From contig NC_052162.1 in NCBI RefSeq assembly GCF_902713615.1, positions 117,667,989 to 117,731,988 of the forward strand: DNA of 64,000 nt, written 5' to 3'. Position numbers and translations under genes: made by a program. Below, one piece after another: positions 1,608 to 62,605 of this stretch; position 1 is the first letter of the stretch; each line of letters starts with the position of its first letter. A model generated the notes under the pieces. That model saw only the letters and a list, made by a program, of their open reading frames with translations. It did no database searches and was not told the DNA's origin. The DNA comes from Scyliorhinus canicula (taxonomy: Eukaryota).

Positions 1608-2346
1608 TCACTTGTGAACTTGTTGATGTCTCAGCAGGTGCGATGAAACACAAAATCCCTTCCCACATTGAGAGCAGATGAAAGGCCTCTCCCCAGAGTG
1701 AACTCGTTGGTGGCTCCGTAGGTGGGATGGATGACTGAATCCCTTCCCACATTGAGAGCAGGAGAATGGCTTCTCCCCAGTGTGAACTCGCTGGTGTGTC
1801 TGCTGGCTGGATAACCGAGAGAATCCCTTCCCACAGTCAAGCATGTGCACGGCCTCTCCCCATGTGAACTCGCTGATGTCTCTGCAGGTTTGGATAACTG
1901 GAGAATCCCTTCCCACAGTCAACAGGTGACGGGCCTCTCCCCAGTGTGAACTCGCTGGGAGAAGATCAGTTTCTCGAGAGCTTTATGAAAGCCACCCCAA
2001 GTCAGAGCATTTAAGGTCTTATTGGTGTGAGTGACACTGTGTCTCCGCATGTTTATAAGGGAGAATCCCTTTCACACACAGAGCAGTGACGGCCTTTCCT
2101 CAGTGTTAACTAACTCGCTGGTGAGAGATCAGGTTCTCGGAGCTTTGAAGCCACTCCCACAGTCAGAGCATTTAAAGGGTCTCTCATTGGTAGTGAGTGA
2201 ACTGGTCCTGCGGTGAACATGAATCCCTTCCCACACACGGAGCAGGTGAACGGCCTCTCCCCGGTGTGACTGTGTCGATGGGTTTCAAGCACAGATGGGA
2301 ACTTAAATCCCTTTCCACAGTCCCCACATTTCCACCGTTTCTCCAT
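1608..2346 (-). pseudogene. ZNF gene A, C2H2 zinc-finger pseudogene
   Basis: Starts [14 protein letters not shown] at 2346; fingers are split across frames (ORFs 2110-2382 and 1608-1922); ends HQQVHK-stop like its paralogs. Confidence 0.85.
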
Positions 2347-2877
2347 GTTGCTGGTGTCCTTGTGTCTCTCCAAGTCGGACAATCAGTTAAAGTCTCACAC
2401 AAGATACGGGAACTTTCTCTCTCCGCTGTGAATGGTGTGATGTTTTTTCAGGTTGTGTATCTGGTTGAAGCTCTTTCCACAGTCAGTGCACTGGAACACT
2501 CTCACTCGGGTGTGTGTGTGTCTCGGTGCTTTTCCAGTCACACTGATGTTTAAAATCTCTTGAAGCCGAACAGAACAGACAAACGTTTGTTATTCTAGAT
2601 TGACAGGCCAATGATATTCAGAACCCAATGAATCGAATTACTCTGTCAGATGTTGATGCAATGTTTCGTTTTGAGATTTCTGTCTGTAAACCTTCCTCTT
2701 CTAATATCCTGTAAAAGGAGTTTACAAAATACCATCACTGTCAGTACAGGATAGAAATTCAGAACAGACAATTGTAGTTTCTCTGGAACATTTTTTCCTC
2801 TCTCATTACCCAAAAGGTGTAAATCTCCATCCCACACACTCTCCCTCCATTCTCACTCTGCTGTATCTAATATTCAC

Positions 2878-2943
2878 CCTCCCAATTCACCTGAAAGTGC
2901 TGATTCAGGCTGATTGACAGATCCCTGCTCACTGCTTCCTGTC
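2878..2943 (-). other. Predicted 66-bp exon 2 of ZNF A (intron 2 = 2709-2877)
   Basis: tccag|GACAGG...TTGGGAGG|gtgaat followed by the acceptor ttttacag|GATATTAG; the same module occurs in C, D, E, F and H. Confidence 0.65.
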
Positions 2944-3339
2944 CTGGACAGGTACCTGAAAATCTTCATGCAGGCTGCCAGACAGATATGTGTCTGTATT
3001 ACTGGACTGAAAATGTTTTAATGTATAGGATTGTTCCGGTTGGTTAAGATACAGGGGGTTGTGACTGATCATGTCCTTGAACTTGCTGCCTATGAGGGGA
3101 GTCAAGCAGAGATAATAAAGTGCTGCAGGGTTACAGAATGGGACCCACTCGAGACTGACAGAATTGCCCAACAGACAGTCAGCATCAACTCAAAAGGCCC
3201 AATGGACTCCTCTTCTGTTATAAATCTGATTGGAAATATATAACGTAGCTACTGTACTACAGTCCAAAACAAGAATAATGAATGTATTTTATTTCATAAC
3301 CATCAGTAATAATCTAATCTGTGTCATATAACACACAGT

Positions 3340-58735: not shown

Positions 58736-59626
58736 GGTGCGGGTGTGCTTGTGAGGCTCCAGGTTTGACAAAAGTTGAAACCTCGTCCACACACAGAACA
58801 CGTTTACGATCTCTCACCGCTGTGAGTGCTGCAATGTTGTTTTCAGGCTTGTAACTGGTTAAAGCTCTTTCCACAGTCAGTGCTCTGGAACACTCTGACT
58901 CGGGTGTGTGTGTCTTGGTGCTTTTCCAGTCACAACGATGTTCAAAATCTTTTCCCACAGACTAAAAATTATCTTTCTAGATTCACATCTCGATGATATT
59001 CAGATCCTGATGAATGGAGAGACTCTGTTAAATCTTGGTGTGAGGTCTGATTTGCATTTCCCATCTGTAAATCCTCCCCTTGTAATATCCTGGAAAGTGA
59101 GTTTACAAAAATCATCGCTGTCAGTGACAGATAGAAATTCAGATGGGACAATTCTCGTTTCTATGGAATATTTTTTCCTCCTTTTCCCTTAACGTTGTAA
59201 ATCTCCGTCTCGCACACTCGCCCTCCTCCCTGGGCTGAAATGCAAACCCATCTGACCATCTGCACCATTTCTTTCCTCCACTTTCAGTTTTCACCTTCCC
59301 TCTCCCTGGATTCAGTTCTCCAGCTCCTGTCTGCAGACTGACAAAATCAATGAGTCTAATTGAGAGGTTGGGGCCTCCAGCGAGTGTTTGTAAATCCTCC
59401 CCGCCCACCTCCCAGGGTTTCCTTTCTTCCCAGAGATCAGAATCCTCATTGAGTCCAGAGCGGAACCTCTGATTTATTGTCCTCCCCTCCCCCACCCGGA
59501 ACAATGGGGATAGGGGGCGGGGCTGGAGGACTGCGACAGGCACCTGGTCCTCCAACCAATCAGAGTAAATAGGGGTGGGGCCTATTCTCGCTGTTTGATC
59601 CCCTCAATCCTCCACTCACTTAACCA

Positions 59627-59859
59627 TGATGTGGGGATGCCGGCGTTGGACTGGGGTGAGCACAGTACGAAGTCTTACAACACCAGGTTAAAGTCCAACA
59701 GGTTTGTTTCAAACACGAGCTTTCGGAGCGCAGCTCCTTCCTCAGGTGAATAGATTTGTCACCATTCACCTGAGGAAGGAGCTGCGCTCCGAAAGCTCGT
59801 GTTTGAAAGAAACCTGTTGGACTTTAACTTGGTGTTGTAAGACTTCTTACTGTGCTCAC
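59627..59859. mobile_element. Penelope-type palindromic non-autonomous element
   Basis: 96-bp near-perfect inverted arms 59656-59751 and 59764-59859; CTCACTTAACCA direct repeat at 59615-59626 and 59855-59866. Confidence 0.75.
59767..59801 (+). ncRNA. Minimal type I hammerhead ribozyme motif (mirror copy on the minus strand at 59714-59748)
   Basis: CAC-CUGAGGA-A-GGAGC(UGC)GCUCC-GAAA-GC-UC-GUG: both conserved core boxes, helix II, palindromic AGCU helix III and a CAC/GUG helix I. Confidence 0.65.
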
Positions 59860-60870
59860 TTAACCAAGATGGCGGCCGTTAACTTGGGCCAAGTTTCAGG
59901 AGGGAGAAATTCCGAAGGTGCGAACCAGGGAGCTGACAATTTTCAATAGGGCTTTGCCGACCATAAAGTTTTTTCCAAACCTTCCCACCACCTCCTTAGT
60001 TTCCCTCGTCTTCTGTCGGACGAACAGGTAAACAGTTCGACAACTGCGCTTGCGTGCTGGTGTCCCAGCCCGGGGAAGCTGCGCATGTGCAGTGTCCCCC
60101 TCCCGCGCTTCATGCTGAGGACTTGACCAATGGGAATACTTGGCGGACCGGAAGGAGTCTGCACCTCCAGCCAATCAGAACACGGGCTTGTGTGACTAAA
60201 GATTGAGCTTAACGCAGACTGAAACCTCCTCCTGTCTCCAACATCTGGGAGTAAAACACTTTCTTTTCTCCCCCTTTCCATTTCTTTTCTCATTCTCACC
60301 TTCAATTGGTCACTTGCAGCAACTGAAGGGAAAGGAAGTGAATCCAGGGAGGGTGCAGACTCTAGAAAGCTTGGCCCAGGTCTCTCTCTCTCTCAAAGAC
60401 ATTGACATCCTTTGCTCCCTCAGCTTGACACATTTATTTGTCTGGCTTAAAGGATCGTCTCTTTCCTAATGTTCACATTAAAGGGCTGGTTTGAGATGGT
60501 TGACATTTAAGGGGACACTAAATTAATATTGAACGGAGAAATATCTACTGTTGTCATATGGTACAGATTAGATATATAATTTATGGTTATGTAAAGTACA
60601 TTTATTATTATTTCTAGTTGTATATTGTATTTCCAGTCAAAGAGTCAAGATGGCACAGAAGCTGTCCATTGGACAACTTGAATCCATGCCGACTCTCTGT
60701 CAAGCAATTCTGTAATTCTCAGCATATCTTCCTGTAACCCAGCAGTATCCATCCAATTTCCTTCACAAATTATCGTACTCGATTAACCTCATAGGCAACA
60801 AGTTCAATATTCTGATCAATCTACTCCGTCCATGAAAGACGTTTCAGTCCCAGCCTGCATGTGTGTCCAG

Positions 60871-62605
60871 GACAGGAAGGAGTGAGCATAGATTTGTCAA
60901 TCAGCCTCAATCAGCACCTTCAGGAGAATTGGGAGGGTGAATATTAGATACAGCAGAGTGAGAATGGAGTGAGAGTTTATGGGATGGAGATTTACAGATT
61001 TTGGGGAGTAAAAGAGGAACGAATGTTCCATAGAAACTAGAATTGTCTGTTCTGAATTTCTATCCTGTACTGACAGTGGTGTATTTTGTAAATTCCTTTT
61101 CCAGGATATTCGAAGATGCGGAATTATAGACGGAAATTTCAAACCAAACATTATATCAAAATCTGATAGTCACTCGATTCCACAGGTCTGGAATATTGTC
61201 AGTCTTTGAAACTAGAAGGAGAAATGTTTCTGTATTCTGTCTGTTTCAAAAGATTGTAAATACAAGTATGACTGGAAAAGCACCGAGATAATTGATATTT
61301 TTGAGAAATAAAATCATAGCTTTAGTCAGAATGGAGTGGGGAACTTGGCCTTTAATCCAGGCTGAAAAAAAATCCACCTTTATCCTCTGCAAAGGAGATT
61401 TACCAGGATGTTGCCTGGAATGGGGAGTAGGTCTTATGAGGAAAGGTTGAGGGTGCTCGGCCTTTACACATTAGAACAGAGAAGGATGAGGGGCGACTTG
61501 ATAGAAGTTTATAAGATGATCAGGGGAATAGATAGAGTAGACAGTCAGAGACTTTGTCCCTGGGTGGAACAAACCATTACAAGGGGACATAAATTTAAGG
61601 TGAATGGTGGAAGATATAGGGGGATGTCAGAGGTAAGTTCTTTACCCAGAGACTAGTGGGAGCATGGAATGCACTGCCTGTGGAAGTAGTTGAGTCGGAA
61701 ACATTGGGGACCTTCAAGCGGCTATTGGATAGGTACATGGATTATTATAGAATGAGGGGGTGTAGATTAATTTGTTCTTAATCTCGGACAAAAGTTCAGC
61801 ACAACATCGTGGGCTGAAGGGCCTGTTCTGTGCTGTATTTTTCTATGTTCTATATGTTCTATATAAACACACCCGAGTGAGAGTGTTCCAGAGCAGTGAC
61901 TGTGGAAAGAGCTTTAACCAGTTACACAGCCTGAAAAAAACATCACACCATTCACAGCGGGGGGAGGCTATACATGTCCTGTGTGAGAGTTCAACTGATT
62001 GTCTAACCTGGAGAGACAGCAGAACATCCAGCACCTTAGCGAAATGGTGGAAGTGGGAAGAGATTCAGGTACCCATCTCATCTGGAAATTCGACACATTC
62101 ACACTCGGAGTGAGACCATTCACTTGCTCTGTATGTGGGAAGGGCTTCAGTGGATCACCCACCTACAGAAACACCAGCGAATCCACATTAGGGAGAGACC
62201 ATTCACCTGCTCTGACTGTGGGAATGGATATAGTACTTCATTCATTCCAAATGATGAAACACCAACAAGTTCACACCGTGGAGACACCGCTGAACTGCTC
62301 TGCAGATGGGAAGGGATTTACTGAGTTACCCAACCTGCTGAGCCACGTCACAAACACTTAGGAGAGACCCTTTAAATGCTCTGACTGGGAGTGGCTTCAA
62401 GTGGTTTTAGGGACTGATGGAGCACCAGCGCATTCACACTGAGGAGAGACCGTTCAGCTGCTCTCACTGCACAAAGAGGTTTAGAATGTCATTCGCCCTG
62501 CAGAGACACCAGCGAGTTCACACTGGGGAGAGCCATTCACCTGCACTGTGTGTGCGAAGGGATTCAGCTAGTTAGGCCATCTGGGGAGACACCAGCGAGT
62601 TCATA
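60871..62605 (+). pseudogene. ZNF gene H, disabled, with a CR1 insertion
   Basis: Exon 2 at 60871-60936, exon 3 from 61105; frameshifted fingers at 62040-62605; insertion at ~61290-61866. Confidence 0.85.
61395..61862 (+). mobile_element. CR1/HER1 3' end inside ZNF H
   Basis: SYEERLRVLGLYTLEQRRMRGDLIEVYK and a (TTCTATG) tail. Confidence 0.9.

Follow-up and report, generated by a model that had tools for sequence, protein, structure and literature searches.

In this study, we describe an array of C2H2 zinc-finger (ZNF) genes in a stretch of DNA from the cartilaginous fish Scyliorhinus canicula (contig NC_052162.1, positions 117,667,989 to 117,731,988; hereafter the window, 64,000 nt, to which all coordinates refer), and propose that it is probably a lineage-specific cluster of polydactyl, effector-less C2H2 genes built by tandem copying of a head-to-head two-gene module. 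A scan of the whole window in six frames for the pattern C-x2-C-x12-H-x3-4-H found eight finger blocks whose strands strictly alternate minus/plus over 1608-62605: A (1614-2490, −), B (7752-8570, +), C (20102-20584, −), D (32664-33315, +), E (41189-41900, −), F (49516-50166, +), G (58571-58717, −) and H (62459-62604, +), the last with degenerate fingers from about 61999 on. Were eight genes oriented at random, strict alternation would arise by chance with a probability of 2/2^8 = 0.008, and with two remnants added, ten slots alternate without exception. This is the order (A/B, C/D, E/lost partner, E′/F, G/H) that an earlier, sequence-only reading of this DNA had put forward, and it was recovered as claimed. 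The dot-plot check proposed with that reading, a self-comparison of the window, revealed homology between copies in both flanks of the fingers, reaching about 700 nt upstream of finger 1 and about 150-440 nt past the stop; on the 3′ side, the copies share this untranslated region (UTR) and common repeats, and no module boundary was found in that comparison. The ZNF layout is real and its anatomy solid. We found no description of a two-gene ZNF module in cartilaginous fishes in the open-access literature, and the layout is apparently undescribed.

The pairs flank homologous cassettes, P1 to P5, which were identified by BLAST of the best-preserved one (P2) against the window and alignment of the copies. 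P1 (6404-7249) comprises a left arm (6404-6517), a core (6518-6993) and a right arm (6994-7249), and P2 (27037-27908) has its arms at 27037-27319 and 27709-27908. In both, the arms are inverted repeats, as the sequence-only reading had described: in P1, 6425-6517 and 6994-7086 are 89% complementary over 93 nt, with another 38 nt at 87%, and in P2, 27178-27308 and 27709-27839 are 95% complementary over 131 nt, the match extending to about 210 nt overall. The outward strand of each intact arm reads CCAAC(A/T)TCT|GTGAGT, a putative exon-1 splice donor, at 6465 (−) and 7046 (+) in P1 and at 27292 (−) and 27725 (+) in P2, which places the divergent donors 581 and 433 nt apart, respectively. P4 (47441-48188) retains a full core and right arm, with an internally deleted left arm (47441-47468 plus 47471-47513) and a donor mutated from GT to GG at 47923 (GGGAGT). 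P3 (42662-43171, +) and P5 (60069-60492, +) consist of right core and right arm only, the former with a weakened GTCAGT donor at 42862 and the latter with the donor change GT to GG at 60247 (GGGAGT). The right half, which faces the plus gene, is found in all five cassettes and the left half in P1, P2 and P4, having been lost from P3 and P5.

It is the core between these arms that provides the best evidence that the whole module was likely the unit of copying. This core (400-480 nt) is not palindromic: outside the arms, the similarity of P2 to its reverse complement is close to random. All matches of the core are in direct orientation only; those of the left core of P2 are to P1 (E = 5e-18) and P4 (E = 2e-24), and those of its right core extend to all five cassettes. 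The copies thus have in common a unique, asymmetric centre that faces the same way throughout. Such a pattern is expected if the entire two-sided unit was copied in tandem, and not if inverted duplications had occurred separately at each site.

According to this history, the ancestral gene would have been compact, its short non-coding exon 1 being separated by an intron of about 0.35-0.6 kb from a single large exon. The latter comprises a leader of about 350 nt, in which three fingers have decayed, followed by a Kozak ATG (MEK[PR]WKC), 6-10 fingers and a short 3′UTR. An inverted copy would have set two such genes head to head around an asymmetric, moderately CpG-enriched core of 0.4-0.5 kb, and the whole two-gene module would then have been copied in tandem, at least five times. 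Subsequent birth and death would have followed, with insertions of long interspersed nuclear elements (LINEs) and other repeats swelling introns and spacers, two genes deleted, four turned into pseudogenes, finger arrays altered in number and diversified in their contact residues, and at least one pair (C/D) homogenised arm to arm. Since the copies are 72-85% identical in pairwise comparison, the expansion is old rather than recent.

The predicted gene model is drawn from features common to the copies. In an alignment of nine upstream regions, invariant columns surround TACTGAC...TTTTGTAAACTCCTTTTACAG|GAT, which looks like a branch point, polypyrimidine tract and acceptor; the YAG acceptor is kept in eight of the nine copies and lost only in D. 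About 350 nt past the acceptor translate, with stops, as three decayed fingers, forming the leader. At the start MEK[PR]WKC, six of seven copies (A, B, C, E, F and G) show A at −3 together with G at +4, D having CTG, and an in-frame stop lies 11-38 codons upstream of the ATG in every copy compared, with a TGA at −13 common to A, C and D. In the 3′ flanks of A, C, E and F (e.g. 20096 downstream to 19940, and 50173-50330), the TGA stop is invariant; past it, the consensus stays open in frame for about 27 codons (LQVLDSAVIAAVNYIQDC...), a stretch that is 77-83% conserved, not above neutral-looking parts. A basking-shark homologue, P0176, begins within the region that corresponds to the fossil leader, and therefore the fossil fingers were coding in relatives, where the protein again consists of fingers only. 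Protein homologue searches with B and E returned no near-identical match, the best chondrichthyan match being at 56-68% and the results dominated by generic ZNFs, and exact look-ups of 17 open reading frame (ORF) variants from genes and cassettes matched none. The exact exon 1, start sites and splicing given here are best read as predicted from sequence.

Open reading frames are kept by B, C, E and F only. Gene B has a predicted exon 2 at 7385-8579 (+), with a leader of fossil fingers (7385-7733) and an intact ORF (7734-8579; 281 aa, 10 fingers); its predicted intron 1 (7046-7384, 339 nt) is the sole compact one, the P1 right arm leading directly into the conserved intron and acceptor region, whereas intron 1 is swollen by insertions in the other copies. 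In gene C, the predicted exon 2 (20096-20959, −; last intron base at the acceptor 20960) contains an intact ORF (20096-20602; 168 aa, 6 fingers), and the predicted intron would reach the P2 left donor at 27292 over about 6.3 kb with LINE fragments inside. Gene E (predicted exon 2 41183-42111, −) has an intact ORF (41183-41773; 196 aa, 7 fingers) and has kept its acceptor (last intron base 42112), and upstream of it no left arm or exon 1 is recognisable. Gene F (predicted exon 2 49213-50172, +) also has an intact ORF (49498-50172; 224 aa, 8 fingers). Only B and C among these four combine a canonical arm donor with an acceptor.

The remaining four genes are pseudogenes. Gene A (predicted exon 2 1608-2708, −; last base of the acceptor AG at 2709) has the fossil-finger leader and an ATG at 2346, and several frameshifts break its finger array, which runs in two frames, into ORFs at 2110-2382, 1919-2050 and 1608-1922. 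Gene D (32290-33321, +; 8 fingers) carries three lesions: it starts with CTG at 32646, its acceptor reads AC in place of AG at 32288-32289, and near 33150 one of its linkers contains a +1 frameshift. In gene G (58480-59089, −), truncated beside a LINE 3′ end, two fingers are left and a stop lies inside finger 1, and gene H (61105-62605, +) has lost its start, carries a 579-bp insertion at 61289-61866 and ends in degenerate fingers with a stop. Of two further genes only traces persist: E′ (46491-46765, −) retains the upstream intron block and acceptor (46539) of a minus gene whose finger exon is gone, and the partner of E survives solely as a promoter arm, its space being filled by LINE sequence.

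This state of decay gives some weight to a more sober description, in which the locus is mostly the graveyard of an old expansion with little present function, whose palindromes are kept by gene conversion and not by selection for expression in pairs, so that terms such as repertoire and surveillance would overstate it. Half of the eight finger blocks are pseudogenes, another two genes have been lost, no module in the window has two intact genes, the copies have diverged to 72-85% identity, and repeats sit inside P3 and just left of P5. On the other hand, B, C, E and F retain long open frames with a scaffold dN/dS of 0.22, B is represented in RNA runs, and the conserved arm block treated below is equally conserved between non-partners, which fits selection better than conversion between partners. 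We therefore consider this description possible but clearly the less probable one. The lack of a fully intact pair nonetheless speaks against co-expression of partners having been selected for here, and it weakens the suggestion of the sequence-only reading that the array is a transposon-surveillance system whose pairs are expressed together.

With regard to composition, the cores resemble vertebrate bidirectional promoters. The right half has a fixed grammar in P1, P2, P4 and P5, which runs GCGCATG, CCAAT, 21 nt, CCGGAAG, 23 nt, CCAAT, about 70 nt and the donor, with the two CCAAT boxes 43-44 nt apart and the ETS/GABP-type CCGGAAG in between; P3 has lost the ETS site. The left half contains CCAAT, a cAMP response element (CRE) or TGACATCA, a YY1-like AATGGCG and GC boxes. 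In P1, the motifs are the CRE TGACGTCA (6604), CCAAT (6635), two CCGCCC, GCGCATG (6848), CCAAT (6925), CCGGAAG (6946) and CCAAT (6969), and in P2 they are ACTTCCG (27324, adjoining the arm), TGACATCA (27336), CCAAT (27367), GCGCATG (27554), CCAAT (27605), CCGGAAG (27625) and CCAAT (27648); the motif scan of the cassette cores gave no match to a TATA motif. Thus NF-Y, GABPA/ETS, NRF1-like, YY1-like and Sp1 motifs occur in conserved order and spacing within a CpG-enriched core. In human bidirectional promoters, NF-Y, GABPA, NRF1 and YY1 are enriched (PMC3082894), and GABP has likewise been described there (PMC2077898). By definition, a bidirectional promoter serves two divergent genes that start within 1 kb of each other. 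The likeness to such promoters (PMC3082894, PMC2077898) extends to the distance between the putative donors (433-581 nt), the CpG-enriched core and the set of CCAAT, CCGGAAG, GCGCATG, CRE and Sp1 motifs. It is a likeness in sequence alone, and in contrast to those promoters the two genes served would be paralogues, inverted repeats border the core and the unit in its entirety forms a repeat family. Promoter function of the cassettes, like DNA binding by the proteins, is predicted.

Some indication of activity comes from RNA-labelled sequencing runs, assessed as the share of sampled 31-mers found in them, a measure that carries neither strand nor splice information. In runs from five studies, 0.2-0.47 of the sampled 31-mers of 6400-8600 were present, and for the P1 cassette (6404-7106) the share was 0.29-0.66, with cassette words in at least 14 runs. 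Paralogues cannot account for the P1 words, because the core is only about 70% conserved. By our own estimate, two short first exons would give a share of about 15-20%, and the excess could reflect either long or overlapping first exons, read-through, or promoter-associated transcription.

These data also bear on whether the cassette could instead be a foldback repeat, like a miniature inverted-repeat transposable element (MITE), or a recombination scar, with the true promoters and first exons, and perhaps an effector exon, located elsewhere. Terminal inverted arms around a unique centre are what such an element would look like, its arm block is far better conserved than the neighbouring sequence, the start sites are putative ones and two arms are without a GT donor. 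Against this, the arm in compact B passes directly into conserved intron and acceptor, the NF-Y/ETS/NRF1 grammar is conserved with fixed spacing, cassette words recur across the RNA runs, and within the window the block is confined to the cassettes; moreover, tblastn with 210 ZNF N-terminal regions detected no effector exon and in-frame stops precede every ATG. We regard a foldback or scar origin as very improbable.

For the module history itself, several results weigh on the other side. The gene tree, built from 748 columns of non-repetitive sequence, is a star in which all five inner branches are weak, and constraining the minus genes to one clade costs 11 log-likelihood units without being rejected (approximately unbiased test, p = 0.11), so that the tree speaks neither for nor against a split into minus and plus genes. 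Rare changes run across strands, among them a 9-nt deletion common to A, E and H. Partners C and D both carry two small deletions and a repeat-derived stretch, and their introns have at least 360 nt of additional sequence in common, the mirrored intron segments 22147-22505 and 31558-31957 being 87-89% identical. Strict copying of modules would not lead one to expect this, and therefore module 2, at least, was either homogenised between its arms or made anew once the modules had been copied. The CpG enrichment is modest, and LINEs and satellite score equal or higher. Two of the four intact ORFs are without the predicted 5′ structure (F with its GG donor, E with no recognisable arm), the RNA word share of up to 66% means that the arm exon model is probably incomplete, and divergent transcription, start sites and splicing at the cassettes are predicted ones.

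The case of C and D is also what could be said for a different origin, namely that the pairs arose one by one, single genes having been duplicated and each having gained an inverted partner by fold-back or inverted duplication. The deletions, transposon-derived stretch and mirrored introns of C and D are unique among the copies, and theirs is the only pairing in the tree, weakly supported as it is (67/83). However, independent inversions would leave unrelated centres, in contrast to the homologous, co-oriented core of P1, P2 and P4, the ten slots alternate throughout, and A and B are not sisters, with an identity of 77% to each other as compared to 84-85% for A with C and with D. We thus judge a pair-by-pair origin unlikely and favour copying of the two-gene module. 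The corresponding claim of the sequence-only reading, that the whole palindromic module was amplified, stands in respect of the co-oriented core and the alternation, and has to be qualified in view of the star tree and the homogenised or re-made C/D pair. Similarly, its description of the cassettes as CpG-rich is borne out in kind and not in degree: core CpG observed/expected is 0.61-0.80 (0.80 in P2) versus 0.50 for the whole window, which is a real but modest enrichment, and P3 stands at 0.27.

The most conserved part of the module is a block starting at the exon-1 donor, newly found here, which extends over about 195 nt in every arm and in some arms over as many as 270 nt (7046-7249, 27037-27292, 27725-27908, 43043-43171, 47923-48188 and 60247-60492). 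Its mean pairwise identity is 92.6% (range 89.6-95.8%), followed by the next intron block (86%), the acceptor region (82%), finger 1 (80%), the exon-1-like stretch (78%), the leader (72-78%), the left core (72%) and the promoter core (69%). Arms of non-partners are as alike as those of partners, which favours purifying selection over partner-to-partner gene conversion. Within the window, the block was found only in cassettes. The block may represent a genuine first exon, a downstream element of the promoter or a site for a common regulator. A structured RNA, small nucleolar RNA or microRNA in the arm was considered and is unsupported: Rfam at gathering thresholds gave no match in the window, the block included, and the arm block folds no better than shuffled sequence (z = +0.8).

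More speculatively, the inverted arms may be more than a relic of inverted duplication, and the block could be a family-wide control device, on which either a master regulator or the invariant finger 1 of the family itself would dock, or from which hairpin RNA would arise. In the docking variant, binding of the block would switch all modules together; in the hairpin variant, read-through of both arms would produce a hairpin RNA and, from it, small RNAs acting family-wide in trans. We hold this to be improbable, but if true, sharks would possess a KRAB-independent ZNF repertoire coordinated in cis or in trans. Irrespective of its role, the arm block is a concrete, searchable unit with which the family and its promoters can be surveyed genome-wide, and a well-defined candidate regulatory element.

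At the protein level, B, C, E and F match only zinc-finger families in Pfam (zf-H2C2_2, E = 1e-45 to 3e-81) and, with 6-10 tandem fingers each joined by TGE(K/R)P linkers, belong to the polydactyl C2H2 class (PF00096/PF13465). Finger 1 follows the consensus CGDCGK.[FY]..PS.LE.HR..H and is conserved across copies. The finger number and the contrast of a conserved first finger with variable helices agree with the sequence-only reading (B 10, C 6, E 7, F 8 and D 8 fingers). Pfam detected no KRAB domain (PF01352) in the four proteins, and neither Pfam on these proteins nor tblastn gave evidence of SCAN (PF02023). The tblastn queries were the pre-finger N-terminal regions of 210 ZNF proteins, many of them of the KRAB or SCAN type, and at E < 1e-3 they yielded only chance short matches outside the finger exons and leaders of the window. 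Matches of SCAN proteins at 22752-23018 (+; E = 0.007-0.2) turned out to be the C-terminal part of LINE ORF2, on the strand opposite gene C. Only five residues precede finger 1 (MEK[PR]W, with K), which leaves no room for a FiNZ domain, and an upstream coding exon could join only within the 30-110 nt between leader stop and ATG, which is unlikely. As far as testable here, from Pfam, the 210 N-terminal regions and the in-frame stops before the ATG, the genes are effector-less as claimed. In line with this, the KRAB box is among the domains enriched in families missing from cartilaginous fishes, according to the whale-shark genome paper (PMC8455134).

The recognition helices, in turn, show the pattern that is usual for diversifying polydactyl ZNFs. 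In a set of 39 fingers, the helix positions with the highest entropy are −1 (2.97 bits), 3 (3.10) and 6 (2.88), and the value is zero at Cys, His and Leu. Using a crude Nei-Gojobori count over finger pairs, which are not independent and whose values carry no significance test, we obtained a dN/dS at −1, 3 and 6 of 1.75 for all finger pairs and 2.13 for nearest-neighbour pairs, versus 0.22-0.23 for the scaffold and 0.22 for the conserved finger 1. On these counts the contact residues look positively selected, as the diversifying helices of the sequence-only reading had led one to expect.

In tetrapods, the standard example of a DNA-recognition repertoire that evolves rapidly is provided by the KRAB zinc-finger clusters. 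Like these KRAB zinc-finger protein (KZFP) clusters, the genes described here are clustered polydactyl C2H2 genes with their fingers in one large exon, evolve by tandem duplication and birth and death with many pseudogenes and variable finger number, and combine a conserved scaffold with a signature of positive selection at helix positions −1, 3 and 6. Unlike them, the shark genes have neither KRAB nor another N-terminal domain, and they form divergent pairs on a common cassette, KZFP genes being mostly arranged head to tail. A large, clustered, fingers-only family with diversifying contact residues represents the same evolutionary mode without the known effector domain, and could act through the invariant finger 1, cofactors bound by fingers or simple occupancy. 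Divergent pairs copied as a unit are also familiar from histone H2A-H2B genes, and arm-to-arm gene conversion from the ampliconic families in sex-chromosome palindromes. As in these systems, a head-to-head pair with a common control region is the repeat unit here and its arms are more alike than their surroundings. In contrast to ampliconic palindromes, the high-identity arms are short (0.1-0.3 kb), their equal conservation between non-partners points to selection, and the products are diversifying DNA-binding proteins and not dosage-driven genes. A parallel in fishes is with teleost FiNZ genes, likewise a lineage-specific ZNF expansion outside the KRAB system in transposon-rich DNA; these genes were put forward as repressors of transposons in the early embryo and examined in that role (Wells et al. 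2023, PMC10547256). FiNZ proteins, however, carry a defining N-terminal domain, whereas the genes here start directly at finger 1, and the main text of the FiNZ paper (PMC10547256) has no mention of sharks or of a head-to-head organisation. The value of the locus is comparative and descriptive and does not lie in a new mechanism; it is a cluster of a familiar kind, and about half of its genes are dead.

Several repeats lie in or beside the cassettes. P3 contains a 165-bp insertion (42878-43042, 16 nt past the P3 donor) and is followed by an L1-like LINE (−) within about 43400-46100; a copy of the inserted repeat, which measures about 165-175 bp and is probably a short interspersed nuclear element or a MITE, lies just past the P4 right arm (48211-48386, 91% identical). 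To the left of P5, a hairpin repeat (about 59633-59872) has arms at 59656-59751 and 59764-59859 that are 97% complementary around a 12-nt loop, and is flanked by direct repeats CTCACTTAACCA(T/A)GATG at 59616-59632 and 59856-59872; it has the appearance of a MITE whose point of insertion was a YY1-like AAGATGGCGGC site. For the hairpin (59656-59859), Rfam gave only sub-threshold miRNA-like matches and no hammerhead. An extra ETS-CCAAT-like fragment of right core lies at 59524-59565 (+), about 500 nt left of P5, and is 79% identical to P2 27618-27657.

Elsewhere in the window, Pfam identified L1-like LINE fragments with endonuclease and reverse transcriptase. A satellite at 14743-17812 (96 copies of a 32-nt unit, 93% matches) has a strong skew of G over C and gives rise to long spurious ORFs because several of its frames are open, and a minisatellite at 9704-10146 comprises 10.5 copies of a 42-nt unit with 97% matches. 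An intronless ORF of 153 aa at 11536-11994 (−) has two stretches of similarity to queuine tRNA-ribosyltransferase (Pfam TGT, E = 3e-33), the central part of the protein being absent, and is probably a processed pseudogene. Finally, LINE 3′ ends at 57477-58355 (+) and 62644-63498 (−) adjoin pseudogenes G and H, in mirrored fashion, where these are truncated at the 3′ end, and are 70-75% identical; they could stem from a common insertion that preceded the duplication or be a coincidence within an abundant family.

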